Shown here: positions 16,101 to 55,400 of the stretch, piece after piece
How positions within the stretch are numbered: position 1 is the first letter of the stretch
Layout: every line of letters begins with the position of its first letter
DNA from: Aplysia californica
Taxonomy: Eukaryota
Direction of reading: 5' to 3'
Length of the DNA stretch: 64,000 nucleotides
Assembly: GCF_000002075.1 (NCBI RefSeq)
Contig: NW_004797329.1
Coordinates: 92,457-156,456, forward strand
The notes under the pieces: model-generated
Told to the model about the DNA's origin: nothing
The model's database searches: none
The model's input: the letters and a program-made list of their open reading frames with translations, nothing else
Program-made: the position numbers and the translations under genes

Positions 16101-19100
16101 TTTTTGAAGGATAGATTACCATCTTATTTCATTTTTTGTAGCATTTTTACCTATCAAAATTTAGAATCCAGAGGAATCTTGGACTGTATTGTGTATATGG
16201 TCTTTAGATGGTGATGTTTATTTTAATTGGAAGGGCCTCATAAGTTCTTTTCTCAGTTGAAATATGCATGTCTACTTTTTTCTTTTACTAAAACAGGGCT
16301 GTTTTGATCATTGTGGAGCATATCTACCGTCCTCTTGCTTGTGTCCCAAGTCTTATAGAATTATAGAAGATGGATAGCCAAGCCATAAACGATTATATAG
16401 ATAAAAAGATCCTGTTTCAGTGTTTTTGCTCTTACTTTTACTTTATTGAGTTATTCCTGATACAGCTGAAAAATCATTGGTGGTAATTGCAGTTGCTCAC
16501 AATAGCTAAAAGTGCCCTTTGAGTATTGCTGAGCAATTGCTTGCACCAGTTATTGATTTATCCAAAGTACTTTGTTACAACTTGAAAATACCTCAGTCGC
16601 ACTCCCCTCTTTCCCCGCCCTGTTGCCCACAGAGAGAGTGTGCAGCGTACCAACGACCGCCTGCTGAGCTTGCTGTCGGATTCTGTAAAGACGTACGTGG
16701 GTGTGGAGGACACCATCAACCGTAAGCTCAGCCAGGTGGTCAGTGGGACCCCGAGGACTTCTGGAGCTCAGGCTGACTCGCCTCCGGTGAGGTCGCGACC
16801 CCCGAGTGTGGAGCCAGGGCTACGGTCTGACCCACAGGGGAGGATGGGCTCTCCAGCCCCCGAGAGATATGATAGGAAAGGAGGAGGTATGTATGAGTCA
16901 AAGTTTTTGATTTTGATCTTTTTTTTATGGAGGTTTTTTTTTGTTTTGGTTTTAGTCCAATTTTTTTTTTGGGGGGGAGGGTAGGTTGTGTGTGTGTTTG
17001 TGCTTGTGTATGTGTGTTTGTGGGTGTGTATGTATGTGTGTGTGTGCTCTCAAGAGTGGGGGAGAGGAGGGGGTGTGGGATGACTGATAGATCTTAAAGG
17101 AGAATAGGTCATGAGGTACTGCCTTTCTTTTTTTTTTTTTTATTGCAAGTGGTAGGCAGTATGGTCAGATTGTGTTGTCTGAGATAAGTTGTCCTTCACT
17201 ATTTTCTTAATCTGTCACTGGTGTAATGTGAACAACATGCCATTTCCACTCTTCCTGTCTGTCCCTCTTTTATTTTCATAAACTCTTCTTGTCTTTCTTC
17301 AGTATTTTAAAAGCATCTTAGTCTTAATTCAATAAAGCAGAAAATAGTTAAGTTTAATCAGCTGCTGAACATTTGTGGGTGGTTGGCGCATGCTCTGATG
17401 TGGTGAGCTCCTTTTTTCCTGTCAAACATCTATCGACCTTATCTCTTCTCATTCTTTTTGTGTGCTTGTTGCTCTCGTGTAACACCTCTAATCTTCAACA
17501 CTTATATGACCTAACTGTATTGCAAGTAAAACTCTTACTTAATTGAAACAAATAAAAAACAAGCAAAACATGTATGAAGACCTCTAAGAATAAACTGATA
17601 AGTAACCCCCCGGGGCGGTGCTACTGACTGAAGTGTGTTTAGGCTGTTCCCAAAAGGGGGAACGTTAACATCTTGAGTTCTTATGCGCAGTAGAGTTGTA
17701 ATTGTAAATGGGCTGATTCCTCAATGTCATGCTCATAACTGTGCCTGAACTGCAACAGGGAACTGCTGCTTTTACTTTCCTAATCCTTACTATCGTCATT
17801 TCTCCTCTACTTCTTTTGTATGTTTGTCACACTCTTGTGACCCGCTATTTCCGGGGTGCCTTGATAGTCAAAGCAGACTTTGTGCTGTTGAAGCTAGAGA
17901 GGTGAGCAGAGTGAGTGATTCCCTGTAAGGACTTCTCTGTTGACATCCACCCCTTGGCGCTCATTTGACTTTATGCAGTTGCGAGCACCATAAAACCTCT
18001 ACTAAAAACAAACAAAACTGATAAATCCAATGATGTGTCCTCTTCCAGCTGCAGCAGATGGAGACACAAGCCAAGACAGCCACACCCTAGAAGACACGAG
18101 TGTCTTGTCAAATGCCACAGATGAGGGTCTGGAAATCTCACACCGACTGGCAGAAAGTATATTTGTCGGACCTGATTTGGATGCCGAGGGAGAGGAAATC
18201 CTCACAGGTATGTCCTTACCTCTCTTACTTTTTTTTTTGCAGTTGTTACTCTATTGTACCACTTCTAATCTTCGCCTCTTATTGGACCTAATTGTGCTGC
18301 AAGTACTGTAACGCTTACTAAAATCTGACACCTCCCTCCCCCCCCCCAAAAAAAACAAACAAACCCCAAACAAAACAAAAGAGCAAACAAAACCAATCCA
18401 TGCACAATGTAATGATGTGCATATTAACTGCTACAGATGCCCGGGGTCGGCTCCACACTGCAGTGACACAGCTCCTAGAGCTGATGGAGCGCTCCACTTG
18501 TCAGCTGATCGAGGCAAAGTCCACCCAGCAGGAACTGCTAGACACCTTAGCCAGTCGCGCCCGCGAGGTAGAGACGAGCAGCACCCGATGCACCGAGCTG
18601 GACGCTCAACTCGCTGCTGAGATTGAGGCCAAGGAGTACCTGGGCCTGGAGCTGCACAAGGCTGAAGGTTAGTGCTGAGCATGGGTGCCTGGTTTTACGA
18701 CACACACACACACATTCTCTGTTCAGTCTGTTAATTTTCACACCAAGCATACATTCTGTTTAGTCTGTGTCTGGGATCTTCATACCATGCATACATTCTG
18801 TTTAGTCTGTGTCTGGGATCTTCATACCATGCATACATTCTGTTTAGTCTGTGTCTGGGATCTTCATACCATGCATACATTCTTTGCTCTGTCTGGGTTT
18901 TTTTCACATCACACATTCTTTTTAGTCTGTGTTCTTCATACCATGCGTACATTCTTTGCTCTGTCTGTGTTCTTCTTACCATGCATACATTTTTTGCTCT
19001 GTCTGTGTTCTTCGTACCATGCACACATTCTGTTTAGTCTGTGTTCTTCATACCATGCATAAAATCCTTGCTCTGTCTGTGTTTTTTTACACTATTCATA

Positions 19101-22100
19101 CATTCTCTTTGAGTGGTTGGTCGATGCTCTAGTGTGGTTTGCTCTTTCTTATCTATCAAATATCTATTGGGAGCATAACAGAAGAAGAACATCTTTCTTA
19201 ACATACATGATAACTTTTGTCTAGATAATTTACTTATTAATTTTGCACTTGAGGTCCATCGTTTTAAGAACTTGCATATTTTCTATCACATCTCTTTTCA
19301 GATTCTCTCACTAAATTGTCTTGCTTTGTTATTTCTATAACTTGTCTCTATATGAACTTGAATCTTAATGGGACTTTCACCTCTATTTGTACAGTAATAA
19401 AGCTATCAAGCTGTAGTGAGACTACTGTTACTTCTTACTACTCACAACTATTGGTGTGAGTGGTTGGAGGGTACTCTGGTGTGGCTTGTTCCTTCTTTCC
19501 CATCAAGCATCTTATCATCCTTATCACTCCTTCATTTCTTTGCATGTCACTCTCTAGAAGTAACACCTCTATTCTTCGGCACTTGTCCTTTGTGTTATAG
19601 GTGCTGTAAATGTCTTATTGAAATCAAATAATGCAACCATAGGTGTTTATGTGGTAAAGTCCTCTTGTGCTTCTTGTATGCTCTCTTGAAGTCCGCTCCT
19701 TCTATTTCTCTGTCGGTATTGCTATAATTCTTTTCCATTCTTGTCAACATTCAGAAATCGTGTTGGCTCGGTATAAGTCGACTGTCTTGTCTACATGTTT
19801 TATTCTGTCCGCCATCTTTTTTTATCTTTGGTAAATAACTCTATGAGTGGTCTGAGGATGCCTCTGATTGGCCTTACTTCTTTACTGTCCTTCTATTGTT
19901 TCTGTATATGGGTTGATAGAGGATGCCACTGAAAGATCCTTTTTAGCAGGTGGTTGGCAGGTGCTCTAGTTTCATTTACTCCTTCTTTCTTATCAAACAA
20001 CTATCGTCCTGATCTCTCCTCCTTTTTTGTGTTTGTTTCTCTCTTTCAACACCTATAATCTTGGGCACTTATATGACCTTATTAACAATACCTTCATCTC
20101 TAAAGGACCATGATTGTGTCCATGTACTTTCATTTACTTACGTATCATACTTCAAATCAGACTGTCCTAATTTGTTTCCTGGCTCTGTGAATCGTCTTGT
20201 CCTCACCTCACTTTGCTATGACTTGAGCCTTTTCTTAATCTCAATCCTTTAGAAACTGCTGCACCACAATCTCTCCGGAGGACAGGCCAAGGTTATTTAT
20301 AACTCAACAATATTCTATATTTTTATAGTAATTTTTTTTAAATGTCGATCTTTCTTAATTTCAAAGAATGGCTTTAAAAAGGAACATTTTACTGAACATT
20401 TTGGTGTTGGAGAGGATAATAGCCTCTTAGAGTGGTCAGGGCCTTACAACATTCATGTTTTTGGTTTAACTATTTAAAGGATATTAAGAAAGGAATAAAT
20501 GGTTTGATTATATCTTGACCATAAATTTGCCAATTTAATTCCATTTTCTTCTTAAGATGAAACTATTAAAGGAAGAAATCTTATAGTTTGACTGGAGATG
20601 AGGTATATACTGGTGGAGGACAGGGCAAAGTGTATTCCAATTAATCAACAATCTATTCATCAGCAACCATTGCTGTACTCTCACTGCATGCGTTCTGTGG
20701 AATGCTCTTCTTGTCTTTTCTGTCTGGTGTTAGTGTGCAGCTTTTTGGTCTTTACCTTTACACTACATATTTCATTTTTCAATTATAGATCAAGTAAGCT
20801 TTGTTTAAGAGTGAACTATTATAGCTGAATTTACATACTTGCTTCTCGTGTTGATTGATTATAATGGCTGAACAGTGGCTTTGATATAGTTAAGCTCCTT
20901 TTATTTTCTAAATATTTTTCTGCTGTTGGGTACTTCCCACCCGTATAATGCTCTTCAGTTTTTATACCTGGCTTAGAATGTTTACAATGTGTGACATTGT
21001 ATGTGTGTTCAAATGCCTTCCAAGGTTATTCTGTTAGTACAATTGATTTTTACTTAAGAGATACTGCATGGTGTAGCATGTTTGGCATGTATGTGAGGTT
21101 TATTTTGAAGAGTTTCCAACCAATGGCTGCACTGCCCCCCTGCCTTGCCAGGTCTCATCTCTGGCTATCGCTCCGAGCGAGAAGCGCTGGACACCCAGGT
21201 CCAGTCTCTGGAGGAACAACGCGAGGCTCTCATCATTCAACTGGACTCGACCCGCTCCAGACTCTCCGAGTTTGAGCGCTCGCAGTCGGAGATTGACTCC
21301 ATGCGGGAGGAAGTGGGACACCAGCAGGAGCTGCTGCGGGAGAACGCTGGACAGGAGATGCAAGGTTCCTGTCGCTCTCGGGCCCGCAGCCCGCCCAACC
21401 CCAATGTGTTGTCCTACCGTTTTGTGTTTGTGCCCCTCAGTGTTTTTATTGGGGCATACTTGCTCCGGCGATGGTGGCTGAACTCGGAATAGTACACACT
21501 CTTTCTTTTATTGCTATCAAAACCCAGGGTCTACAATAAAGGTGAAAGTAATTTCTTTCAAGTGAACATTGTAACAATAATATCATCTGCCAGAGACACC
21601 AAGGAATTTTGTCTTCGATGTCTTCTGTGGGTTTGATTCTCTAGTAGTAGTGCTTCTGACTGTAGGACATAAAGATGTAAATATCTGGGATAAAAACTTC
21701 TAAATTATATATGAAAATGTTTTTGCTTGGTCTAGTCAAGCCAGATTGTTGATAAATGTTGAAGTCAGATGGTCAAATTATTAATTTTAAATCACAAAAT
21801 TCAAAAGAGTGCTATTTTTCTGTTCAAGCCATCTTTGTCTTGGAATGTTGTTTTTTGCTTGTACATATGGCAGAGTTTATGTGGTTTTATTTAAATGTTT
21901 CAAGGTGTGTTAATTGTATTGAGTAGTACAATAGAACCTGTTCCGCATGACAACTAATCGTTTACTTCCTAAAAAAAACAAATTTTGCCTGTCCACTTTC
22001 AAGTGGTCAAGTCACTAAAGTTGTGTATAAAATGCAAAGTGGTTACTTTCTAAACTCTAAGAGAATATTTTTACTTTTCATGGTACTTTGACCTCTTTTT

Positions 22101-25100
22101 ACAGAGACATAGGTTAAAGTTGACATTTATTGCTTCAGAATGGGTTCAACTGTATTTGAAATTTAAGCAGTACGTTTGACTGTCCTCTGAATTATTATGT
22201 TAAATGTGATGTTATGTAAAGTTGTTTTTTGTTCTTCTTTTTGTTTTTTGTTAATTTTTTTTTTGCATCGAATACTTTTTTTGATTGTTTTGAGTTTGAT
22301 TTCTTTCCACGGTATGTTGGTAGCAAAGCATTTAACCAGGGTCTTGCACCAGCCTAATTCTCTCTAATTGTAAGCATTTTGTTTTAACTGAACTTTTATT
22401 TAATCTGAGAACAATCCATGTTTTCTTCTATTAGTAATTTTTTTTTTAAACTGCCTTCTGTGTGGGTTTTTTTTTTCTGTTATGTTGGCAGTAGTTTAAG
22501 TAATTGGTTTCAAACTTCAATGTAGTTGTTCCTGAATCAAGACTCTTATATTGTTGTCTTTCATGAAGATGAGAGCATTCTCAGCAGCTGTTATGATGGT
22601 AGCCAGAACTATTGTCAAGCGTTCTCTGAGCTACTTGATATATATACTTCTGTATGTATGCAACTCCATTGCAAAACCTCCACCTCACTTTTTCGGGGAT
22701 GATGAATAGAATTGACTCAGACAATTTTTGATCAATAAAATGAGATCTGGATTCATTTTTGAGTGGAACTTGTTTTTATTTTATCACCAAATATATTTTA
22801 GAACTTTCTTATGGGTTTAAGGGTAGACAAATTGCTAACTGCATGAGTACCTTTACGCGGGCTGGCTATGGTCACCATTGTAATACATGGTGTGACCTGT
22901 CAGCCTCTGGTTATTTTTCTTCTCTGTGGTGGTTTTACTTGGTGATTATGGGTTTCATAATAATTTTTTTTTTTGGATCATCAATGTTTTCTAAGCTGTT
23001 TCAGCACTAACAGTTTTCAAGCCTTGAAACTGTTGCTAAGGTAAGAAATCCTTCCCCCCCCCCCCCATTTCAATCTACAAGTGGGCTTCAACTTTCAGAG
23101 CAGTTTTCAACTCTTTTTTTTTTTTTTTTGCCATATGAGGGTTTTTCTCTTCCAATTTCTTCCCACAAGGTTCTTTTTATTTGCACAACCTTATAAAACT
23201 GCAATATTTTTTATGAAAAGGAGTACTATGGGGTTGGTTATTTTTTTTGTATGTAAATCAATGCTCTGTTTGAAGCTTTTGGGATACTGTAGTTCTTTTT
23301 TAAGGTTATAAGATCATGTCTGAGTCATAGCAGCTATTTATTGCCCTTTCCACTCTGTCCATTTTTATATCTATCATCCCGAATCCAACCCTAAATCTCG
23401 CCCAAAAGCACACGTATCATATGCTTTATCCTCCTGCAAAATATTTTACTACAACACTTGATATTGTGGCTTGTATCAAGGCGGAATACACATAAAGTAC
23501 GATGTTCCTGATAATTAGATGTGTAGCAGCCAGTCAAGATAGGGTTAGAATATGTCTAAAGAGAAAGGTTCAGTTTTTCAAAAAGTAGGGTGCCCATTAA
23601 TCTTCTTTTTTTTTTTAACTGTCAAAATTAGATGATTGAATTGAAGAACCAGCAGTGGACCACCTTTGAGATCTAGTTGGGGAACACAAAGAAGGAGACT
23701 TTGACAATTCTTACCGTTGCTGTTTTTAAAAATGATATATAAGTTAAACCTTTTCCGTCTTTTACTATATGATGCTACAACTTTTCTTTACAGACCATCT
23801 GAAGTTCATGTTTGTTTGCCATATGCTGAATAGTTTACTCATGATATCTGGTCAAGTCTTACAGCTAGTTCAGTTGACATAAATGATATTCACATTTTTT
23901 TAAAGTTCATATAACTGGCTAAATTATGTGGCTAGATTTGACATGTTACTTATTTTGGCTGGCTATTCTACATGTTATTTCCTTCCGTCTTGTCTAAAGT
24001 GATATGTTTAAGTTTTAGTTCAATGTTAAAGGTGAGTTCTTTCTTCAGATGTCAGGTCTTTTCTTAAATATGTGGAAAGGGCAAGTCATATACCTGTAGA
24101 TGCATTTGTAAATAGCTGATACTCATTTGGCATAATTCTGTCGTGGGATTTTTATTACTGATCAAAATATAGTTTGGGGGGTAATTGTAGTGTATTAAAG
24201 AGCTTTTTTTTTTTGGAGGAAGACGTCACAGGTGTCATCTTGATGCAAGTCACAAAGGTGGAGGTTTTGCTTTTCTCAAGTGGAGGAAAGTCATACAGAT
24301 TAGATCCTGGTTCAATGCTTTTTTTGTCCTTTGTATGATTTGTATTCTCACCACCACAAGCTTTTTTCCCCTAGTATGCATGCACCCCCTGCCCCACAAG
24401 TTTTGGAGTGGTAGAGTTTTACTACTGAAACGAATTATTAACAAATTGATGATCGAAATATTATGTTTGCATAAAAAAACAGCATGCAAGCAGCTTGTCA
24501 GTTTTGTTTCTTGCTTAAGAAAATAGTTAGAACATTTATTTACATTACTCAAAGCTCATGCAGGTTTTTGCTTTACTTTTACATGGTTGCTAACCAGAAT
24601 GCAGCATCTCCTGCCCCTTGCCCCCTTCACTCCTACCCCCCATCCCTTTATAAAAATTTCTTTTCTAATACCCTTTTTTTGAGATTTTCGTTTTCACAGT
24701 AAGAGGGACAATAATATATTTTTTTTTTTCTCAAATTGTAAAAGATTTCTGGACCCAGTTTTTCATACTAGGATCACTTAAAGTGCATGAAATATAGCAG
24801 GTTTGGATGAAACAGAAATGGAAAAAGTGCCGATAAGACAGAACATTTTACTTGGCTTTTTTTTATATTCAGCATTATGAAAGCATGTTCCCTGTTTCAT
24901 TGAATTTAATAGCTGTATGGGTAAAACATTTGCTCAAGGTGCACTCTAAAACAACATTAAATCAGGCATTCTGTTACCCCTTAATAATGTAAACAAATTA
25001 GAAAACTATGGTCTTTTTTCTGTAGATTCACCACTGAATAAGTGACCAGTATTTGCACGATAATAATTTAAATTAAAAGCAATTATAAAACATATGCTTT

Positions 25101-28100
25101 CAGGAGTGTGTGAGTATAGAATGAGGCTCAAGACCGAAAAGGGATCTTTGACTCTGACTTCAGAAGAATATAGATGTTGAATCATAAGTTGCAGGATTTT
25201 AAAATTTATATTTTCGGTTTTCCTTACGAATTTACTTTTTTCATTCTTGGCAACACTAAATCAGGTACCCAATTTACATGTCAATTTTTTGGTGTTTTTA
25301 GGACTTATAGCATTATTTAGTACAGTTTGCTTCTTAACTAATAAAAGACAAAACTCATTAAGACAGCTGCATGTTTGCCCCACCCTGAGTGATCCCCCCC
25401 TCCCCTGCCCTCCCCACTCACATTTGCTTGCTGTAGAGATTCTACCCCAGATCTGGTGTTGTTTATTGTAGCTATTGTGTCATCAGTGGTCACATTCGCC
25501 GCCGTTGAGCATGATGTCTGTTGTCTTTTGTGCACAGTTACTGGACAGCAAACTCCTCAGGCTACGACTTCAGAACAGCCAGGTTTGTGCCTAGCCTACC
25601 TACCACGTACCCTCTGTAAAGATATGTCAATCGTAGACCTGCCCTATAATGCTGTTTGCGTCAATCCTGGGTTCTTTTGCTTTACAGCGGAGATCCATCC
25701 CCTAGCCTTTAGTGGGCTACAAACAACCCGCAGCCTCTTCTTTTTGTTACAGCCCTTCCCTTTTATTTTTCTTACTCTCTGATTAAGGCTGAATATCAAC
25801 AACAAACTTCTGCCTTTTCTTGCCCCAATCCTTTTGAGTTACATTTGTTCAATGTTGTGGAGCTTTATGCCTCTGCCCGGCATATTTGCCTTGGTGTTTG
25901 ATGTTACTGTTACAGAAAAGAGTTTTGACACCCGTTCCTTTCTCCCTGAGTGGTTCTTGAAATGTTAATTTTTTATTCATAAGTGGGGGTCAGTCGAATT
26001 AAAAGAGTTTGATTATAGGAGGAGAATATTCACAATTGGCCTTTCCTTATTCTGTTCATCACTACATCATCATCATCATCAACATGGCTTTCCTTTTTTT
26101 TTTACATCAGCTTCTATGTTCTTTGATAAATTACGCATAGTGTGCATTGTTGTACACTATTTCATCATCTTCATTTTCATCATTTTGTGCTAAATCTTTA
26201 AATAGCTTTGGCTGTTTCAGCCCTTCATTTATCTTGAGCAGCTGTTCTGAAATTCCCAGGTCCACCATCCTTCATGTCTTTTTTTCTCTTATTTGATTTT
26301 GTTCATGGAAGGTATCCTCATCATTGCTCTACGCTATCTGCCGATTAGAGTTTTGCCCTCTCTGGTACTCCTTATTTTAGTTCTGCATTGACCTGACACG
26401 TACTAGCGTGTGTGATGTAATGGTTAGGCTCTTCATTTCAAATACAAGGTTAGTTTTATTTCTAAATTTGGAAGAGATTATTTTAGCTCTGTCTCTCTGC
26501 TGGGATGTGATCTGCACTATTTGGGAATCGCACTGATTGACAGGGCTTAAGCATCCCCACTTTCACCTATATTATCTAAATTTCTAAACTACTTCCCACA
26601 AAATTACCTTTTCTTGACTTTTTCTTTCACTGCTCCATTGTACAAGTATTAAAAATTCTCTTGAAAGTTCAGGCCAGTTGTGCAGTTGTCCGGGAACTTT
26701 GGAATTTTTTTTGGTCATTGTTTGTTGTGGTCTCTGCATAGCCTGAACAGTTATGTCAGTAGAATAGTGAGTCTGCATGTAGCACTGTAGACCTTGCCAG
26801 ATTGTGGTATCGTTGTGTTGCATGATTTCATGGGTGTTTCTTGATATAAGGTTCCGAACCTTTCTTTGTTTTGGCGTCTTCCTGACTGCGTACATGTGTG
26901 TGTTATTCATTGGTGTTTTATTTTGGTATGGAAATAACCAGACTGTATAAGTTTTGTATACAAGTCATGACCCTGCTTCTGTTTATCTCATAAAGTTTGG
27001 AATGATATTTACCAGCAAAGGAATGTGCAGAAAGGTAACAACAGAGGAGATTCATTGCTTTTGCAGTCATAGAAATGTTTCAACAAACCATAATGGTTTT
27101 CCTCAGATAATGTAAAATTCTGACTTTTTTCTTTGTGGGGATTTTCTTTTTTTTTCTGCACCATTACACATTGAGTGTAGTTTGCACATGTGTGGTTTGT
27201 TTTGATTTTTATCAAACAACTGGCTTTCATTTCACTTTAAGTCCTTTCTTTTTTTCAGTTTTCTTATTTTTTATTTTCTCACTTTACCTCTGTGCTTGAC
27301 GTAGTTCTGTACTTGACAGTTCTGCCTCTTTTCTTTGAGTTTTGCACTGTGTGCACGAGTGAAAATGAAAAATAACACGTAATTTACCCTAAACCGCTAC
27401 AGTCATGCAACTTCTCAGCTCTTTGATATCACCCTCTTTCAGTTTTCTTTTGATTACTTTAATAGTTTGAGATCCCTTAACTCCTTTCCCAGTGACTCTA
27501 ATGTGTGCAGTTTTTAAAAAGTATGTTACTTTTGTTGGTTTTCTACTTTTACTGCCTTGCAGTTTAAGCATTTTCCGTACTTCTATCTTTTTTTTTCTTT
27601 TTCATTTGTATTTTTTCTTCACTCTCTTGAATGCTCTTGTTTGTTTTTCTATAAAGTTTCTTTGTCTAATTTATCAATTTCTGAAAAGTTTTAGATTTTG
27701 TTTCATACTAAAGTACTGCTGAGATAGTCGCATTTCTTTTTGTTTCTCATATTTTTAGACAACAATTTCTTTAAAAATCATTGTGTTCATCTTTGCTTGT
27801 TTGATATTTCTGAAAAGTTTCACACTGTCTTTCTGTGAATTTTATTGTTTTTAACTTTTGCTGTAAGTGTGCTGTGAGCCTTGTATACATAATAGCTTCA
27901 TATTTTTTTGTGAAGGCAAAAGTCGTGTGCAGGAGTCATGTGTCTGTACTTATACATTGTAATAGATTCTGCCTTCAGAATGTTTTCTTCCATTGTAATG
28001 ACAAATGTCTGCTGCCCCCTCCCCCCGTGCCTACCTTGTGGCCACAACTCCCACCACCAACACCCAATCCCACAGCTCTGCTGCAAGAAGTGACCAGCCT

Positions 28101-28396
28101 GAACCAGGAGAAGCGGGAACTGTCCACGCAGCTACAGCACCAGCTGGACGCGTCGCGGCTGCGGCTGACGGAGCTGGAGACAGCCTCGGAGGAGGCGGAG
28201 CGACGCCACGAGGCCGCCCTAGAAGAGAGGAACCATGCCCTGGAGGACATGCGGCTGCAGCTGGAGAACATGGAGAGACAGCTCAAGGCTAGCCGGGCGT
28301 TTGTCGATGTGAGTGCCGTTGCTTTTGGTCAGACTTTATTACTCAGCTCTTATAATAATGATAATAATATAATAATAATTACTAATAATAATGATA

Positions 28397-28427
<31 letters not shown>

Positions 28428-31400
28428 TAGTAATAATAATAATAATTTAAAAAGCCCATCTGTAAATGTCTGACAATGACCAATACATGTGTAGAGAAAA
28501 ATATTTCTCCAGCGAAATAGAAGAATTTGAAGAACTAAAGGTGACGATGACTCTAATATGTTGGAAGTTGGATTGCTAAGGTGAAAACTGTTGCTCAAGT
28601 TCAACTACCGATTTCCTGAGAGACCAATGACTTTTCGTCAGTTAGTTTCTGGTTTCGTGGACACGCGGGTTAAAAAGAGCATATTATTGATGGAAAAGTG
28701 GTAACAGCTTCTGACAGTGCGTGCACAAACCATGATATATCTGATGCAACATATGTGTATTGAGGTATAGAAGAAGCAAAATGACCTAGGAGAAGAGAGA
28801 ACCAGCCATGCAGTGCAACAGCTGGTCAATTTCATCAAGATTTTGGGAATCTATCACTGTAACCCTTAACATGTTAAGTTTCATGAAACGGCTGAGTACA
28901 CAATTTCCTGTAACTGTACAGCCTTTAAAGACTGCTGAAAAGTCTGGTCAATTCGAGAAGTAGACTCTGAAATGTGAATCAGATTGTGAAAAATTGTACT
29001 GTTATTTGGGTGTAAATTATAACTCTTCAGATCAATAATTTGAAGTAGCCAAGTGCGTCAGGAGCAGTTTTTATTGATGATGAATGTTCTTGTTGGGGGG
29101 GGGGGGGGTGTTGTTGATTTTGAGAATAATCTGATAGGTCAATGCGATGTGTGTGTATGTGTGGCTTTTATCCTACGTGCGTGTGTGCTGCTTTTGGAAA
29201 TTGATAATTTGAAAGTAGTCAGCAACACATGTGTATAGCCGAGTGTTTTGTACACAGCAGTAGTATAGAAAGTTGTGTGTTGATCAGATTCAAGGAGGTA
29301 CTCACTTTTTGGACAGACGAAAAGTCATCAAGCTCTTTCAATGACTTATAAATTCTTGAATTTTCTTGTTGGCTACACCAGCTTCTGATTGTTTGTGATG
29401 GATATATTTTTTGTGTATATAAAGGTGATTGTTATGCTCTTAGTTCTTTACTCAGGAATTTTCTTTACAAGTTTTTTTTACTTTGATTGACAATGTTGTT
29501 TTAGAGGTCAATGTATGATCCCTCTTCTCACTAGCAAAAATAAAAGTGGTGGAATAATATAGTATTGCACTTTGGTTTTTTAGATGTTCTTTGTATCATT
29601 TTTTCTTTGATGTATGCTACAGGCCTTCTTTCCATTTTAAAAAAAAAAATTTTTTTTTTTAGAGGCTAAAACAGCACCTGGACATGGATGGCTGGTGCCA
29701 CTATAAATAAATCATTGATGGTCTGGTCTTTTTTTTTTTTTTTTATTACTGTTGCCCATGCCAAGTGCTCCACTTTCAAATTGACTTTCTTTGTTTTATT
29801 TTGTAGTTACACTCCTGTATCAAAAGAAACTAAGGTAGCAAAATTTGGTGAGGAATTTGTTGTCTGTAATGATAGTCAGGTTGTTTATATATTCTTCTAT
29901 TTTGTCAGGAACAAATGGCTGAGAGAGAGCAGGAGAGAGAGGAACATCAGAGAGAGATAGAAAGACTGCAGGAGACCATTGAGGGGAAGGACAAGAATGC
30001 AAATTCACAGCAGAGACTCCAGAGAGAGGTATTTAAAGCGAAGCGAACTCTTGTCTTTACATGTTGTTTTTGTTATTTCAGCTGTCTTTTGGCTCTAGCT
30101 CTTTGGCCAACCCGTAATCTGTTCTGAGCTGAAGTGTTCATTATCTATACTGTCCTTTTGGCAGGTGGTTGGAGATTTGCATTAGTGCATCCTTTTTCTT
30201 CTCATGGGCTCTCATATTTCTATCTCATGTTTCCCCTGCACTGAATAACCAAAATCATGTCTGTATGCTTCTCATTAGTCCGATTTCTATCCGTTCCTCT
30301 TATTGGTAAGATTCACAACCATGATATACATTATTTTGTTCAATTAATGATAATTTGTCCCCACTGACTATGTCAAAATTCATCCACAATTTTTCAGTCC
30401 AATTTTTCAATACTGCGGTGGATAATGGGTTCTCAGGTGTGGTTTGCTCCATCTTTCCTGTCAATATCTATCGTCTTTAACTCTCTTCCTATTCTTTGTA
30501 TGTTACTCTCAAGTAACACTTCTAATCTTTGGCACTTATATGACCTATATGTGTTGCATGTGCTGTAAAACTCTTACTAAAAATAAAAAAATAAAACAAT
30601 TTCAATTGCTCTCTTGTCCAGATTGCTGACCTGACAGAGCAGCTTCAGTCTCGCATCACCAGCCAGAGTGCCATGCATCAGAGAACACTGGAACTTCAGC
30701 AAGCTCTGGAGGACAAAGAACTCAGTGCTCATGACCTCAAGGTGGGACCTTTGGAATGAACTCTTGAATGTTTTATTCCTGTTGTTTTGTGTCTATCTTT
30801 CATTCTCATCTGTGGATGGTTTCGGTGAACTGTACCGTCAAACCTCTAATGGACCCCTGTCTAAGACAAGTCACCTGTACAAACAACCACTTCCCAACCA
30901 ACCTCCCTCCCACCCCCTACCCACTTGCATTTTTTAGAAATTATAATGACACTGTTTAAGATGTCCACCTGTCTAAGACGTTCACTTTTCTCCTCTAAAA
31001 ATGGATGGCAGTCTTGGACAATTTCAACTGTATATGAAAATGATAAAACCTTGCATTTTTTCTGTCCAATATCTACACTGTGTGGATTCTTTGCTGTCTG
31101 TTCTGTTTGTCAGGCCTGTGTCTACTCTCACTTGTTATGGGGAAATGTGTGTATCGTGACTTAGGTGTCTGTCAAAACATTTCATGTTCATATTTTCCTT
31201 TTTGAATTGTGACTGTGAATTACTGGATTTCTCTGTCTCTACAAACAAAACAATTATTTTATATTTCGGTAACTAATTTTTGCTTTCTTATATCTTTCTT
31301 TGGCATTAATCTACCGCGGCGTGTCCAGTTGCCTTCTTTCTTCAAAACAATCCTGTACGTCAATTTTTCACATGTATTTTTGCCTAGGGATGCTGCTGAG

Positions 31401-34400
31401 CAAGAGTGACACAGCAACCTGTTGGTTCTAAATAATCATATAAAATTAGTGATAATGAATGCTAAAGAGAGAGTTCATTTTTTTCATGTATCATGCCACA
31501 TTGAATTAGTATTATTATTATTACTGTTACTTTCACTATTATTTCAATTATGGAAACTATGAATATTATGGTTGGTGTTGTTATAAATGTTATTATTATT
31601 ACAAAAATCATCATATAGTTTTGCAAGCTATTGAAATGCACAAAGCCCAAAAAGCATAGTTCTTTTAAACAGCTGGACAGTGATATATGTGAGGCGTGTG
31701 CTGACAAAATGAGTTACTTCTCGCAATCCACAAATGGGGGTATTGGCCACAAATCGATCGACATTAGACTAAAATCTATAGATTTTCTATTGATGCCATA
31801 TTCTTTAACTATAACCTGTCTTTTATTATTTCATACTTATTAATTCTAAAAACTTCACCTATCTATTTACGTAAGGCTTGAATCTGAGAAGTAACTCATT
31901 TTATCAACACGCTTCACAAATGAGTAATGTATGTGACTCAAACTTAACAATGTGCACCCACTGTGGGTGGTTGGTGGATGCTCTGGTGTGGTTTGCCCCT
32001 TCTCAAACATCTATCGTCCTTATCTCCCCTTCTTCTTTTTTGTGTTTGTTCCTCTCTTGTAACACCTCTAATCTTCTGGCGCTCATGTGACCTAATGCAG
32101 TTGCGTGCGCTGTAAAACCTCTGCTGACCCCCCGGGGCAGTGCCACTGACTGTAGTGCCTTTAGGCCATTCCCAAAGAGGAGACATTTCTCGTTCAAGCA
32201 CAGTAGAATTGTAAATAGGCTAATTCATCATGCCACGCTCATAACTGTGCCTGATCTACAACAGGGAACTGCTGCTTTTTCTTTCCTAATCCTAACATAT
32301 GTTCTTTTTTCCTCTACTTCGTTTGTATGTTTGTCACACTCTTGTGACCCGCTATTTCCGGGGTTCCTTGATAGTCGAAGCACACCTTGTGCTGTTGAAG
32401 CTAGAGAGGTGAGCAGTCTAACTCTAAGTCTGATTCCCAGTAAAGACTTCTCTGTTGACACCCACCCCTTGGCGCTCATATGACCTTATGCAGTTGCGAG
32501 CGCCGTAAAACTCTCAACTAAAAAAAAATATATTTTTTAAACCAAAAAACTCTACTACAACTAAAACTGCTGACCTTTCCCCTCAGACGTGGGTGTCGCA
32601 GCTGGAGAGTGAGCTGGACGAGCGCGGGGACATCGAGGACCAGCTCAAACAAAGGATCACCAAGCTGGAACGGCAGCTCACCGAGCAGGAGGACGAGAAG
32701 GACCGGGACGAGACCGAGGATGACGAGTTGGCCAGGGCTGGACGTCCGACGGGTGACAGGACAGACCAGGACATCCCGACCCCGCTGTCGCCGGTCAGAG
32801 TGAGATCTCGGCCGAGTCATGTCTCCCTGGAGGATGAGCTACACACTTCGGAGCAGTCTGAGGAGGTAGGGGGTCTTTGTGTTGCTGTTGTAAAGTGCAG
32901 AGAGTTTTGCTTTCAAGTGGGGATATGNNNNNNNNNNNNNNNNNNNNNNNNNNNNNNNNNNNNNNNNNNNNNNNNNNNNNNNNNNNNNNNNNNNNNNNNN
33001 NNNNNNNNNNNNNNNNNNNNNNNNNNNNNNNNNNNNNNNNNNNNNNNNNNNNNNNNNNNNNNNNNNCACTGTAACCCTTTGTGATATTTTGCTCACTGCT
33101 TTCTCACCATGACACTTTTGTGACGCTTTGCTCACTGCTCTATATTCCTAGTAAAACAGTTACAAGAGATGTGAGTTATCAATAGGAAGCAGAATGTTAG
33201 AACATGATGTATTCAGCTTTTTAGATTGGAATTGATTCTTTCCCAATATTGGCGTGGGTCTGATTTGTCACTCCTGTCATGTAAATGTGCGGACTGTTTG
33301 ATATAATAGCTCTTAATTGTTATGATGTGATGACCATCAAACCAACAAATAAATTTTGGCCAATATTTTTGTGGGGATCATTAGAGAAAGCAGAATATTT
33401 GCATACTTTTTCCCTTGTGTTTTAAATTTCAGGAATTATTTCATGTTGATAAAGCCTTCAGTGTATGAGATCAGGGGTCATTCTAGCCACCCGTATCAGT
33501 TTCTGTTGGTAAAAGTTACTTAGTACTCTTCAGGCCAACATGTCAGAAGGAAAAGAAGTATTTAAAGCAATTTTCTGTTGATACAGAAAATAATGTTTGT
33601 GCTGTTTTTGTCAACAATTCATGTCTGAGATGGAACATGTATCTTGATAAGCCTATGCTCATCTGAAAGTGATGGATACGTGGACTTCTGGATATAAATA
33701 ATAACAACAGCAGGCTCTATGCGCTTTACACTATATTATTACCCCAGCAGACCATAGAACACTCCGAAACATTCTCAGCTTCCCGTGAAGCATACAGTGC
33801 AAGCAGCTGATTAAGCGCTCAAACACTAACAAACTGACAAGATCTTTCGCTGTCTATAGCCGGGTACCCATTCCACCTGAGTGAAGTGAGGAAAATTCGT
33901 GTAAAGTGCCTTTCCCAAGGACACAACGTCGGGCCCCTGACGGGATTCGAACCCAGGACCTTACGGTTGCGAGTCCGAGAGCCTTACCACTAGGCCACTG
34001 ACGCCACATATTATATATGACAGGTTGAAGATGGTGTGGGGAGAGGCCAGCTATCAGACTGACTTTTTTTCATCATGTAAAGCTATTTCAATTATTACTT
34101 GATTGTCCTTACTGCTTCATCTTTCTCTGTTGTCTTGATATTGGTGCAGTAAAAATGATTTGATTCGTCCTACCCAAGCTGTCGTTTTCAGGACTTTGAT
34201 ATTGGTACAGTAAAATAGATTGGTTTTCTCCAACCCGAACTCTCTGTTCCAGGACTTGATCCATGAGAACCGGGCCCTGAAGGAGCAGGTGCACCAGCAG
34301 CTACTGCAGATCTCCGCCCTGAAAAACCAGCTGGACCAGTTGCGCCACTACGGAGGGGATGATGAAGACAATGACGCCACACAGCTACGACTGCGGCTTC

Positions 34401-49400: not shown

Positions 49401-52400
49401 GGGGGGGGAAAACATGTGTCATCAAGTTTACACCCTGGTGTGACCCTGTCTGGAGCAAACATTGGGGGCTTTTGTTCTGTAATTTATGATCAGAAATGTG
49501 GGATCTTTGCCAAATGTAGCCCTTCAGAGTGGGATGTTAGGGATAACTTTAGAGTTGTAGAAATCTTGTTTTCTTTAAACAGTGGGATCTTAAACAAACT
49601 GGTATCATAAGTGGTAGGATCTTAGGCAGAGACTACTGTATGTAATAATGTTCTCAGGGGCTACCCTTGTGCCAATGTCCTCTGTTTCCGCTTGCAGTGC
49701 ACAGAAATGTGAATGTGGCTGAATCTTGCTTTACCTTGCACTGTCTTTCCTCCAGCCAACCTATTAGAGTTCAGGAAGAGTGGTTGGAGAACACTTGGCT
49801 TAGGTTCTTTCTCTACCATCCCTCTGTTATGTCTGTCTGTATATCTTGCTTTTCCCTGTGATATAGTACTGTTAATGAGTCAGTGTGTTTCTTTGTAACT
49901 CCACAACAAGCGAATTCAAGATTATGATCATTAATCAAGAGATGAAAAATGTGATTGTTGAAGATATACTGTACATTTGTGCTTTCCCTCACTTGACTGG
50001 CACAGGAGAACTTGATAGTAGAAAATAGACTTTGTTTTCCCACCTTGAAAAGTTTTTCTTGCTATTCAGATGCAGTGTGCAACATGCATGATCAGGCTAT
50101 ACACTACAGTTATGTTTGTTAACACACTACAGTTATGTTTGTTTGTACTCGCTCATAACACCCGCCCTCACCACCCCTACCCCCTTCAAAAATAATTTTA
50201 AAAACAAAGAAGCGTGCACATGCCCATCCATCTATACAAACAGTAGCAGCATTTCATATTCAATTGCTTATGGTCGGAGAATATTTCTTCAGTGATTTCA
50301 TGACGAAATAATAAGTGTTTAAATGTTTACTTCAACCCCCTTCATCTCAGATAGTGCACAGTATAAGATCTGTCACATTCTGTAAGGCTTACTGAATGTT
50401 TTTTATGTCTCCCTTTTTATCTAATATTTATTCTGTTACTTTGTTTCGTGGCATAGCTCTTAACCTTAACATGCAAAACGTTTTTTTTCACTAAGGTATG
50501 AATTCAATTCCCTCAAAATTTTATTACAAGTATTTTCCGTGCTGTTGTATTTCCTGACTTCTTTCAGCTGGGTTTTTTTTTTTTTGTGTGTGTTTGTTTA
50601 AAAATATTTCTTCTTTTCTTTACTCCCTGAGTTAAAAATAGTATGATCTTTGCAACTGGTGAAACTTACAGAGTGGTTTGTGGTGAAATCATACTCATCA
50701 ACTTGATTAAAACACACAATTCCTTCTATATTCACAAGCTGTAAGATTGGTACAAAAATATTAAACCAGTATAAACTCTTAGATTTATAAAGTCACTGAA
50801 AGCTCTTTATTTTTATCCATGTGCCATAAGTACCAAAAAAGAAGTTGTTTTTCTTACCATCTAATTGGCACTGTTTTGTAAGTCTGTTCTAAATGGATAA
50901 TTTGGCAAAAGTTAACTTGTCATAAGTGGCAGAAGGTCACATCCAGCACCCCTTTTTGTCGATACTGTATGTGATTGGAGTTCTGCCTTATGAGTATTTT
51001 GCCTGTTATGAACTGTAACTTTAAAAAGAATTGTGAAAGCCTTTATTAAAGAGAATGCTTTTTACTACTACTCGTTGCTCCAAAGCATGGCACAAAAAGG
51101 TATTACCCCAAAGAATGTAGAGAAGGACTTAAGAGTCCTTTTCTGTGCAAAGAATGTTTTTGTCTAAGCCTTCCGCATGTTCTCATTTTATCACTACATC
51201 AATATAAATATATGAGTTGCTTTGGCTGATTCTCAAGTATATGGAGCTTATTTTATTTATAACCATGAGAGATGAATATTGCATGGGTCAATGTGGTTTT
51301 GTTGCAGGCCCATACATTTTGTTGTCCTTTATTCCGTCTTCATTTCGGGACATTTTGAAGTTAATTTTGCCACCCCCTCCCTTTCCCCCAGTTCACGCTC
51401 AGGGCATGTTTAACTCTGACAGAAAAGATTTAAAGATTGACACACACACACACCATAAACCCCCCTCCCCTTTTGATATTTGTCATCAGCTAATCAAAGG
51501 GTGATATTTAAGACTTTCAGGTTAAAAGTGGTGATGGTTGTCAGAAGTATGTGTTGCCTCTTTCCATCAATGAATCCTGTCCCTACTCCACTGCTATCTC
51601 TTCAGGGCGAGGCCAAAGGTGAGCTGGAGAAGATCAAATCCCAACTGTCTGAGCAGACACGCCTACTGGAGAAGGAGCAACAAATACGGAAAGAGTTGGA
51701 GGAAGCCTTGGCTGCAGAGAAAAGTTGTCGGGAAGAAAGTGAGAAGCAGAGAGAGGCAGAGGGGGAGGAAGTTGCAGAGAAGGTTCGAGTACTGGAGGGA
51801 GATGTGGAAGTAAAAGATAATAAGTTGAAAGAACAGGAAGAGAAGATAGAGGCCTTGTCGAATGAGCTGCAAGAAATACAGACACATTCGGAAAAACTTG
51901 AAAAAGTATTGAAGGAAAATAAAGAAAAGTCTGATTCTGAAATAACCCTTCTGCACGAGAAGCTGGAAGTTTCACAGAAGGAGTCAGGAACAAAGTTAAG
52001 TGAATTACAGGAGAAGTTGAAGGAGGAAGGTGCTCACACAGAGGGACAGAAGGTGCTGAATGAACAGCTCAGTAACTTGAAAGCTCAATTAGAAGATAAA
52101 GAACAGCTACAGAAACAGCTAGAAGAATTAGTCTCGGAGAAAGAAGGTGCAATCAGAGATCTTAATGTTCAGTTATCAGCAAAGGAAGAAAATCTTGATG
52201 AAATGAGATCAGTCCAGCTCCAGATGGAAGAAATGGAGTCCCAGTTATGTCTGCGGCAGACCTCTCTGCTTGATCTTCAGGCGGAGAAAGACAAGCTGAC
52301 CTCTGAGCTTGAGAAGATGAGCGATATGAAGAGTCTGCTGGAGGAGAAAGAGCAGACCATCACGGAGATCGAAGCTCAGTTGAGATTCCGACAGACAGCC

Positions 52401-55400
52401 CTTCTTGATCTGGAGGCAGAAAAGGAGAAACTGTTACAGGATCAGGCAGAGAGTGAGGCAAAGTTGAAAGATGATTTAAATGAGAGAGAGAAGGTGGTGG
52501 AAGAGCTGCAAAAGAAGTATGATGAGCTGAAGGAAGGAATGAGCGAAGAAGTGCTGCATATGGAGCAGGAGATGCAAAGGAGTAAACAAGCACGGGTGAT
52601 AAGAAGGTCGCCGGAGGAGGAAGAGAAGGAGGAGTTGGAAAAGGAGGAGATGAGAAACAGAGTACAGGAGTTAGAGACGAAACTGTTACAAGCGTCTGAT
52701 GAACTTGTGGATGTGTCCTCCCGGCTGAAGCTCAATGAGGAGAGATTGTCCCAAACCGCGCAGCAGCTATCAGAACGGGAGGAACAGCTGCAACAGCTTC
52801 AGATTGAGGTGCAACTTCAGCAACAGCAAGAGGCTGAGAACAACAGCGCTCAGCAGCAAAAGTCTGCCGAAGCTGGGGTAAAAGCTGAAGAACTTGAGAG
52901 GCTGCTGCGTGAGGCCGAGGACAGAGCAGAACAGGCGTCCATCAATGCTGCAGAGTTGAGTCAGTTAAAGGCTTCTTTAGAGCTAGACCTGGAGGAGGTG
53001 AGGAGAAAAGAGGCGGAGAAATCTTTCACTTCTGCAGAAGCTAGAAGCGATGAGAGTTTGTTGGCTGGCACAGAGTTGTCCCGCATGGCTCGGTGGGAGT
53101 CTGAGCCAGCAGGTCTCGCGTTGGGACACCGAGACAGTTTCTATCTGCGTTTCCGCATGACAGAAGTCGAGCGCATGTCGAGACAGCAGCAGCAGGAACT
53201 AGCGGCCAAGAATCAAGAACTGGACAGAGTGCGGTCAGACCTGGAGACCTGGCTCAAAGCTGGCAAAGGTCAAGATGCTCTCAAGGTCACCATCAAGGTG
53301 AGTGACGAATGAAACTTGTGTGCCGATTTATATTTTTTTATAAAAAGAAGACTGCAACTAGGAGTTCTGTGTTTTAGCTTTATCAATTGTTTGTTGTTTT
53401 TTTTGTGATGGACATAATTCTTCTGTATGGTCTTCTTTTAATTCATGTTTCTGGCTGGACTTTCTTGAATGTGGTTCTGGTTCACCCAACTCAGTGATTC
53501 CTGTAAGTTCCCCTCCAACGGGTCTGATGTGTGTCTTTGTTTCTAAATTCCTTTCTATTCTCTCTTTTTGTCTCAACAAGGATATTGTTCTTTGCAGTGG
53601 ATGATTTTCCCGTCTTTGTTCCATGTATATATGTCAAATTGTTGGGTGTGTTCTTTTCCATCTGTCATTTTTTAACATCGGTCTTTTCAATGTGAATCTG
53701 TAGTGTTGTGTTTATTATTTTTTTCCTCTTATCTTTGTCCACTTTTATTGTGACATTTTGTTTTTTACAAATTGGCAATTAATACACAACTCTGGTTTCT
53801 GTGTATCAGTTTTTCACAAACTTGTTTTATGGACAGCAGTACAAGTTCAGGTAGAGTATACATAGAATGCTCACATACAGTACTTAGACAATAGAAAGTA
53901 ATTTAAATACTAATTACTCACCATGTTTCGTATATCTCTCAAGTTAGACTTCTCTGCTGCATGAGAAATCGTTTAGAGTAATCAAACATGAGGTGTTGGG
54001 TCTAAGAATGTATATTTTTGTTTTCTAACATGCACTCATTTCTTCCTGGAAATCTAGCTGCTTGACTACCTTTTTCAGCTTAATACGATTTTTCATCATA
54101 GTACAAACGTTCTGTCTCACAGGAAAAAGAAACCATCATCGTATCCCTACAAACAGAAATAGAAACTCTGAAATCCCATGTCGAAGAAAAGAATCGTCAG
54201 ATCGATTTTATGAAAGACGAAATGAGCACCCTGACTCACTCAAGTCGTGTAGATCTGGCAGCAAAAGACCACACAATAACAGAGCTTCAGGAGCAAATCT
54301 ATGTGCTCAAAAACTTCTCATCCGTGACACCACCTTCATCACCACCAAGGTCGGGAGCGACAGCGCCAGGGCAAGCTTTGTCCCCAGAAACAAAGGGGCA
54401 GATCTCACAGCTCAAGTTGCAGCTGCGGAAGGCTCAGTCTGGTGAGTCTTTTTCTTTGTATTCCCATGCTTGATGTCAGGGGTAGTTGAGTGCTAAAGAA
54501 ACATATGTAACTGTTTTTACTACTTTAGCCACATTACGGTTTTGAAGGTAGGCTACTCTCTATATTTTTTTTAACTGTCAAGAGAATTTTGAGTTTTTGT
54601 AGGAATTAATTTTGAGTTTTGCCTGACCTACTCGTTGGACCACCACAGGATCTGATGAGCCACTATTTATTTAATCGAATGAAGTAGATTTTCTCAAACC
54701 ATTCATATATTTCATTTTAATGTCTTTTGTGTAGGCCTAATGAAATATTTCTTGAGTAGGTACTATATATTTTTTATATTACACAAAAATGATTAGCAAG
54801 TAAATTCAAATTGTGGGTATACCAGTTTAAGTGAAATGCAATTTTCATTTCAGTACAAAGGAAAAGGGATCCATATTTATGTGAAAGTTTTTTTAAGGAT
54901 ATTTTCCTGAGATTGTTTTTGGAACTAAAACTAAAAGCTTGAAATTGAAAAGAAAGGTCCTTAACACCTGATAAAGACTGAACTTGGGAAGTATTTTGTG
55001 CGAGTATCAACACTTGTCATTTTGGACATCTTCCTGTTTCCCACTGGCAAATAAACCGTATTGGGAGCAAATGTGTATATGCAAACATAAGCATATTTTA
55101 GTCATAGGAATGCCTTTTCTATACTGCTGCACAAGTATAATTTTTGCTCCTGTACTTAGTACATTTTTTGGGATTGATGGAATAGTGTTGAACTGACAAC
55201 TGTTAATTTTTCTCACCTTTATGCAAGCTCTGAAATGTTGCTAGGTTCCTTTTTATTTTGACAAAACTATTTCAAGTAAGGGTATCTTTCGCTGTTGCTT
55301 TTTAAAAAGTCTATTAATAAGGGGATGGGAAAAAGGTTTTCATATGAGCATTGCACCGAGGTGAGACTTTGTTTCTGCTGAGGCCATTTACTACCAGACT

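Follow-up and report, generated by a model that had tools for sequence, protein, structure and literature searches.

We analysed a 64,000-nucleotide (nt) stretch of Aplysia californica DNA (NCBI RefSeq assembly GCF_000002075.1, contig NW_004797329.1, positions 92,457 to 156,456 of the forward strand; hereafter the window) and found that one exon of an AKAP9/pericentrin-like giant coiled-coil gene, exon 16, continues past a weak splice donor into a short conserved reading frame, the tail, which is followed by a poly(A) signal. Our reading, to which we assign a probability of about 0.72, is that exon 16 and the tail make up a composite terminal exon of this molluscan gene, at which splicing would yield a form bearing the PACT centrosome-targeting domain and read-through a candidate membrane-anchored form. 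As a conserved alternative coding 3′ end the tail is well supported, and as a membrane anchor it is a plausible candidate. The pericentrin/AKAP450 family provides the main scaffolds for microtubule organisation at the centrosome, Golgi and nuclear envelope and for local protein kinase A (PKA) signalling, and, to our knowledge, family members reach membranes via partner proteins wherever they have been studied.

A conserved reading frame follows the weak donor of exon 16

On its plus strand, the window contains a long run of GC-rich coiled-coil exons within AT-rich introns. Exon 16 has an acceptor that we judged good (...ccttgccag) and ends at the donor AAG/GTTCCT (21364/21365; the slash marks the exon boundary), which matches the CAG/GTRAGT consensus at five of nine positions and at none from +3 to +5, whereas neighbouring donors scored in the same register mostly reach six to eight of nine. 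Past this donor the frame remains open for 42 residues, from a Gly codon at 21364-21366 to a Glu codon at 21487-21489, before TAG at 21490-21492. The GC fraction is 0.60 in exon 16, 0.576 in the extension, 0.35 directly 3′ of the stop and 0.32-0.38 in the flanking intron; the step-down thus coincides with the tail stop codon. A first-pass annotation, made from the letters of this DNA, had described an unusually weak donor, a GC-rich open frame of about 42 codons past it and an AATAAA about 43 nt past the stop, and all three held up on inspection (AATAAA at 21535-21540). The features of a composite terminal exon, namely a 5′ splice site that is read through, an in-frame stop and a downstream poly(A) signal, are therefore all present, and the position of the AATAAA would place cleavage at about 21550-21575. 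Exon 16 and the tail are single-copy in a search of the genome assembly.

A frame of this length could have arisen by chance in a T-rich intron and be visible only as noise from intron retention. Frames open for 42 codons are not unusual, with a chance of about 0.13, or about one in eight introns ((61/64)^42), and intron sequence favours Phe, Val and Leu codons, a caveat already raised by the first-pass annotation. The tail frame stands above chance because it is conserved in other species, not because of its length, and it is this conservation that answers the caveat. A word search with the 113 residues of exon and tail returned four short open reading frames (ORFs) from metagenome and Logan data, all running through the tail, and word, exhaustive phmmer and profile searches yielded more than 20 ORFs or gene models whose match continues through the tail to the C-terminus; these come from heterobranch gastropods and bivalves. 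In a 22-sequence alignment, Pro95 is invariant and V98 and G101 are nearly so, within the pattern apolar, Pro, apolar, Gly/Ser, Val, x, apolar, Gly, small, Tyr, apolar, Leu, Arg/His, x, Trp. The linker preceding this core ranges from a few to about 50 residues among species, always in frame, and the stop falls 1-17 codons past the hydrophobic segment in tail-bearing sequences, mostly 5-8. The called protein of one sequence (P0002) reads TGA as Trp, and its true stop is that TGA.

The same picture emerged at the nucleotide level. Similarity between the window and five other loci starts exactly at the exon 16 acceptor; in L002-L009 it extends through the donor and the tail, and the upstream intron is unalignable. 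These contigs are therefore genomic, and the extension, in contrast to the upstream intron, is conserved. The first 30 nt 3′ of the stop are alignable to L002 and L003, two marine metagenome loci that are closest to the window, at 79% identity. Nei-Gojobori counts over the tail core of five genomic loci gave proportions of 0.07-0.34 for nonsynonymous differences (pN) versus 0.47-0.79 for synonymous differences (pS), and a ratio of the corresponding rates (dN/dS) of 0.06-0.41 in the eight pairs with computable dS, with synonymous sites near or at saturation; the same counts gave 0.06-0.27 for the constitutive exon. The frames of the five loci are all open, and their indels are all multiples of three. 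The first-pass annotation had proposed to look in related genomes for codon-level conservation (dN/dS<1) and a conserved stop, and had named frameshifts or stops in orthologous introns as evidence to the contrary; the comparison, once run, came out in its favour, with no such lesion in the five loci.

Furthermore, the weakness of the donor is itself conserved. Orthologous donors consist of G/GT followed by non-consensus bases (GTGCTA, GTTCTC, GTTTTT, GTTGCC, GTTTCC, GTTCAC and GTTTTA), with an invariant GT and departure from the consensus at +3 to +5 in 8/8 species. Poly(A) signals past the stop are AATAAA after about 40 nt in L010, 130 nt in L001 and 279 nt in L004, and ATTAAA after 267 nt in Saccostrea. 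Against a chance origin thus stand an open frame and purifying selection from gastropods to bivalves, over distances at which synonymous sites are near or at saturation, the drop in GC at the stop, and an upstream intron without similarity among the same loci; that explanation is already contradicted, and we give it almost no credence.

Among named species, the bivalves Pinctada imbricata and Saccostrea cucullata carry the tail. Locus L001 shares about 90% identity with an Elysia chlorotica protein and is for that reason assigned to a sacoglossan. Because the tail is present in both heterobranch gastropods and pteriomorph bivalves, it predates the separation of these two groups.

A spliced transcript and gene models of relatives run into the tail

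The read-through frame also occurs in sequence of transcript origin. L011, a Logan contig of 1742 nt from run SRR13891783 of a bivalve-like species, contains a 520-residue ORF (P0067) whose matches fall in seven or more separate blocks over 11.6 kb of the Pinctada genome and in four or more in the window; L011 therefore represents a spliced mRNA. Its last block runs through CAAG/GTTTTA into the tail, the stop and 100 nt of untranslated region (UTR), where the contig ends without a poly(A) tail. At its other end (L011:1-79), a stretch of about 44 nt bounded by GTAAG...CAG resembles a retained mini-intron or a pre-mRNA join, and the TTG at position 80, called as a start codon, does not mark the true N-terminus but results from ORF calling as an artefact.

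Automatic annotations of two oysters already include the tail coding sequence, uncommented. The NCBI models of Saccostrea cucullata, 'A-kinase anchor protein 9-like isoform X1/X2', have the tail as their C-terminus, and they stop there despite about 25 kb of further scaffold sequence, of which 10 kb was retrieved. The Pinctada imbricata model KAK3109089.1 likewise ends in the tail. The earlier proposal of a PACT-less isoform made by donor read-through is thereby strengthened by a spliced read-through mRNA and by tail-ending coding sequences in bivalves; for A. californica itself, the sequence would predict use of both the poly(A) site and the isoform.

The gene is a molluscan AKAP9/pericentrin-like giant with a long PACT-bearing isoform

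Named relatives, collected by exhaustive phmmer with exon and tail and by cluster look-ups, are all molluscan. They include Lymnaea stagnalis CAL1542040.1 (P0006; 5928 residues), annotated as 'Pericentrin/AKAP-450 centrosomal targeting domain-containing protein', a Haliotis rubra 'A-kinase anchor protein 9-like' protein of about 6900 residues, and proteins of Bulinus truncatus, Nucella lapillus, Pecten, Sinanodonta and Argonauta; the Saccostrea relatives also bear the label A-kinase anchor protein 9-like. The PACT domain (PF10495) lies near the C-terminus of the Lymnaea protein (E 1e-21), with which the window exons are collinear over residues ~2100-5217. The PACT exon lies beyond the window, and membership in the family is assigned to the gene by orthology. 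On this basis the gene is a molluscan AKAP9/pericentrin-like giant, and the identity given in the first-pass annotation is upheld.

Coiled-coil matches by themselves cannot name this gene because the rod is repetitive. An exon of about 1.7 kb at 51609-53282 is an example, with 20-23% identity to many parts of the Lymnaea protein and 35% to its true counterpart. An SLMAP- or CCDC136-like identity was considered and dropped after the named matches proved to be molluscan. No vertebrate protein matched exon 16 at E ≤ 0.001 in the phmmer search with exon and tail, Pfam searches of exon plus tail and of other exons returned generic coiled-coil noise only, and a sequence search of the PDB gave no match.

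The long isoform leaves exon 16 at the very donor through which the tail isoform reads. Exon 16 ends in phase 1, and the exon that starts at 28076 supplies the rest of an Ala codon and keeps the frame. The RefSeq protein of Haliotis rubra reproduces this junction exactly, and the Lymnaea, Bulinus and Elysia proteins have it with 15-17 added residues, as does P0020, an 8.4-kb transcript-like Logan contig with a 2656-residue ORF. Precomputed matches to PF27598 (AKAP9_coil_N) fall on the exon 17 orthologues of L001, Pinctada and Pecten. Because the long PACT-bearing isoform shares the donor of the tail isoform, the sequences describe one locus with two alternative 3′ ends.

We also considered whether there might be two genes, an upstream giant coiled-coil gene that ends in the tail and a downstream AKAP9/PACT gene with its own promoter, the exon 16-17 junction being a conjoined read-through. 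In P. imbricata (L014; VSWD01000001.1, 12.44-12.47 Mb), what is a single locus in other molluscs is split into three consecutive models, of 1285+ residues, of 345 residues ending in the tail, and of 2485+ residues with AKAP9_coil_N and PACT; the breaks lie at the tail exon and about 6.4 kb downstream. That annotation would suit two genes, as would the family name AKAP9_coil_N on the first downstream exon, which suggests an N-terminal AKAP9 coil. However, exon 16 joins exon 17 in frame (both in phase 1) in the Haliotis, Lymnaea, Bulinus and Elysia proteins and in the 8.4-kb contig, and all species keep the donor GT unchanged. A pair of genes thus seems to us quite improbable, and it would differ from a single composite terminal exon mostly in which product dominates.

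The 15-17 residues between exons 16 and 17 (P0006:3470-3484, P0008, P0078:594-609 and P0020) are missing from the Haliotis protein; a micro-exon specific to some lineages, or use of an alternative acceptor, may account for them. From about 27990 to the acceptor at 28074-28075 the window is free of AG and hence offers no obvious upstream acceptor.

The tail has the layout of a membrane anchor with marginal hydrophobicity

AlphaFold2, run on the alignment, predicted a coiled-coil helix at residues 3-72, a disordered linker of low confidence at 73-84 and a separate helix at 85-112, with block means of the predicted local distance difference test (pLDDT) of 78 and 87 over residues 91-110. The tail has the layout of a tail anchor, that is, a single segment of 15-17 residues close to the C-terminus, separated from the stop by 8 residues here and by 1-17 in relatives. 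Its best Kyte-Doolittle 17-mer means are 1.3-2.2 across tail sequences, and a crude, position-independent sum on the Hessa scale, calculated with approximate scale values, is +1 to +6 kcal/mol. Such hydrophobicity is marginal and comparable to that of low-hydrophobicity anchors. Small-xxx-small motifs are typical of transmembrane helix packing in dimers, and the layout together with this motif would suit a transmembrane helix that dimerises where a dimeric coiled coil ends. The segment may insert into a membrane, and its short length and moderate hydrophobicity would fit the endoplasmic reticulum (ER), Golgi or nuclear envelope, or the mitochondrial outer membrane.

Among Pfam matches of exon plus tail at E ≤ 1, Golgin_A5 and CASP_C are absent. 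In KASH proteins, the transmembrane helix precedes a luminal peptide of about 30 residues with PPPX at its end; the tail departs from this layout, since its end comprises 8 residues in the window and 1-17 in relatives and lacks PPPX.

Several observations weigh against our interpretation. The hydrophobic segment, in which Pro, Gly and Tyr occur, is short, and its Hessa-scale sum is marginal for a transmembrane helix; the positive charges that flank it in the window are not conserved in bivalves; and neither Pfam nor the ESM Atlas (searched with the 42-residue tail) gave a usable match for the tail. The position of the poly(A) signal varies from about 40 to 279 nt past the stop, no signal was found within 600 nt in Pinctada or in the 100-nt UTR of L011, and the 5′ ends of the Saccostrea models are cut by the scaffold end.

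These properties of the segment lend themselves to another explanation, in which the tail is a real conserved alternative C-terminus but does not anchor: its helix might instead mediate protein-protein contacts or oligomerisation, bind membranes in an in-plane or amphipathic manner, or be a regulated degron of a truncated isoform. Marginal hydrophobicity, the conserved Pro, Gly and Tyr within the segment and the unconserved flanking charges all speak for such a role. Conversely, every species shows the same order of flexible linker, 15-17 mostly apolar residues, a belt of aromatic or basic residues (R/H-x-W) and a stop that mostly follows after 5-8 residues (1-17 overall), the small-xxx-small packing motif suits a dimeric coiled coil, and a degron would not require such positional conservation. 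We therefore regard a non-anchoring tail as unlikely, and as the most credible of the alternatives to a composite terminal exon with a candidate anchor.

Table 1. Features of the AKAP9/pericentrin-like gene around the tail, in window coordinates.
Feature	Position	Strand	Remarks
Upstream constitutive exon ('exon 15' of the first-pass annotation)	18437..18667	+	Ends ..AAG/GTTAGT, phase 1; located in the window by tblastn with the Lymnaea (P0006) and Elysia (P0078) proteins; alignment A3
Exon 16, 71 coiled-coil codons common to both isoforms	21152..21364	+	70% identity to Lymnaea residues 3399-3469
Weak 5′ splice site GTTCCT	21365..21370	+	Spliced in the long isoform, read through in the tail isoform
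Tail linker, Ser/Arg/Pro-rich, of differing length among species	21365..21420	+	In-frame indels of up to ~40 residues (alignments A1, A2, A6); pLDDT <50 at residues 74-80
Conserved hydrophobic segment (candidate transmembrane helix), F20-L34 of the tail, 15 residues	21421..21465	+	Pro, small-xxx-small (GxxxG-like) motif, then Tyr
Basic/aromatic C-terminal end RRWW.., 8 residues (21466-21489), and TAG stop	21466..21492	+	
Putative short 3′ UTR	21493..21575	+	AATAAA at 21535-21540, 42 nt between stop and signal
Intron 16 of the long isoform, 6711 nt	21365..28075	+	Junction ..QEMQ/A-LLQEV..
Exon 17, first exon specific to the long isoform	28076..28308	+	Strong donor GTGAGT

Neighbouring features of the locus

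Upstream of the window, on the same contig and strand (G000:C59, ~22,000-30,400), one uninterrupted frame spans 2809 codons; its match to the first 1200 residues of the Lymnaea protein is weak, and it probably represents a giant 5′ exon of this gene. Two non-coiled-coil stretches a short way upstream of the tail, at 16625-16882 and 18048-18155, show strong conservation across gastropods and bivalves, one of the type ..TN(D/E)(R/Q)LL.LLSD.VKTY..VED.INKKL. and the other ..LSN.TDEGL..S.R..ESIF.GP.LD..GEE.L. Neither belongs to a Pfam family, and they may be binding sites relevant to the tail isoform. Microsatellites of the AAT/AAC type are present at 28330-28470, just past the exon 17 donor, where they read in frame as poly-Asn, and within a coding exon at about 6094-6561, where they encode a run of about 8 Asn. 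Runs of N occupy 32928-33066 and 60604-60888, the first of which starts about 60 nt after an exon that ends near 32865.

Proposed mechanism and implications

In the mechanism we propose, the fate of the transcript would be set at the exon 16 donor. When the donor at 21365 is used, the transcript would cross the 6.7-kb intron into the C-terminal half of the gene, about 2400 residues by orthology, which includes the AKAP9_coil_N region and the PACT centrosome-targeting domain. When the donor is skipped, translation would continue for 42 more codons, through a flexible linker and a hydrophobic helix of 15-17 residues to a short basic and aromatic end, and the mRNA would presumably be cleaved past the AATAAA. 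The read-through product would be a PACT-less giant coiled coil with a tail-anchor layout at its end; its size, about 3500 residues, is estimated by analogy with Lymnaea, the exons having been searched singly. A segment of this kind would be inserted post-translationally, with the whole coiled coil staying in the cytosol. A weak donor close to a stop and a poly(A) signal is the classical setting for competition between splicing and polyadenylation, of which immunoglobulin mu is the textbook case. In the molluscan gene, where the conserved weak donor has both of these beside it and opens a 6.7-kb intron, splicing would likewise compete with cleavage and polyadenylation.

We can tentatively go one step further and picture an ancient locus with two functions, dating back at least to the gastropod-bivalve split, whose N-terminal rod, about 3400 residues long and common to both products, would either reach the centrosome through PACT or itself become part of an endomembrane, with the competition between a weak 5′ splice site and a nearby poly(A) site deciding between them. 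We hold this broader proposal to be possible but somewhat short of an even chance. The membrane form would then serve as a giantin-like tether or as a membrane-bound scaffold for microtubule organisation and PKA signalling.

If the composite terminal exon works as proposed, an isoform that exchanges its centrosome-targeting half for an anchor of its own would be a new way to place a scaffold, and the locus would offer a clean natural example of a switch between a splice site and a poly(A) site that governs localisation. If the bifunctional extension also applies, this would be the first pericentrin/AKAP450 member that is itself an integral membrane protein. It might further show how cells without adaptors of the nesprin-1alpha or GM130 type build non-centrosomal microtubule-organising centres. 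Aplysia, a model with large neurons and abundant RNA data, would allow the isoform to be tested directly. The comparison also points to a systematic gap in annotation, since several molluscan genomes miss the tail or split the gene into separate models.

Comparison with known systems

Golgin transmembrane domains share a Tyr and a His, with a spacing that differs from that of the tail. Like giantin (GOLGB1) and golgin-84, the read-through product is predicted to have a rod that exceeds 3000 residues, a flexible linker and a single hydrophobic C-terminal helix containing Tyr, followed by His/Arg and Trp and a very short luminal end. Unlike these golgins, it has no match to their sequence families. 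The cephalopod (Argonauta) orthologue has been named 'golgin subfamily B member 1-like' automatically, a label that is probably driven by its coiled coil.

The immunoglobulin mu switch between secreted and membrane forms sets a weak 5′ splice site against an intronic poly(A) site. The arrangement at exon 16 is analogous, with a suboptimal donor and a stop and poly(A) signal close by, such that splicing versus cleavage would decide on the anchor. Its polarity, however, is reversed: in the molluscan gene read-through would add the anchor and splicing would remove it.

A choice of 3′ end also underlies CASP/CUX1, for which golgin reviews describe one locus whose shared N-terminal part is joined to alternative 3′ exons, giving a tail-anchored golgin or a non-membrane protein (PMC4707255, PMC6611411); the arrangement is also described for C. 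elegans (PMC11789633). As in CASP/CUX1, the choice of 3′ end in the molluscan gene would decide between a C-terminal transmembrane anchor, here a candidate one, and another mode of targeting. In CASP, however, exons of their own further downstream encode the anchor, and the alternative product is a transcription factor, whereas here the candidate anchor would arise by donor read-through and the other product is a centrosomal scaffold.

Within the family, our search of the full-text literature found no description of a tail-anchored or transmembrane isoform of AKAP9, Yotiao or pericentrin. Yotiao is the shortest vertebrate splice variant of AKAP9 and acts in membrane channel and receptor complexes, where it binds membrane proteins (PMC7770493). 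The tail isoform resembles Yotiao in being an N-terminal, PACT-less isoform of the AKAP9 family that arises from an alternative 3′ end; it differs in that Yotiao is described as binding membrane proteins and not as integral to the membrane, whereas the tail is a candidate anchor of its own. AKAP450 and pericentrin are recruited to the nuclear envelope through nesprin-1alpha and to the Golgi through GM130, where they organise microtubules (PMC5640514). The molluscan read-through form would likewise place a member of this family on endomembranes, but, unlike its vertebrate counterparts, which are linked to them by a membrane-bound partner, the scaffold would here carry its own anchor.

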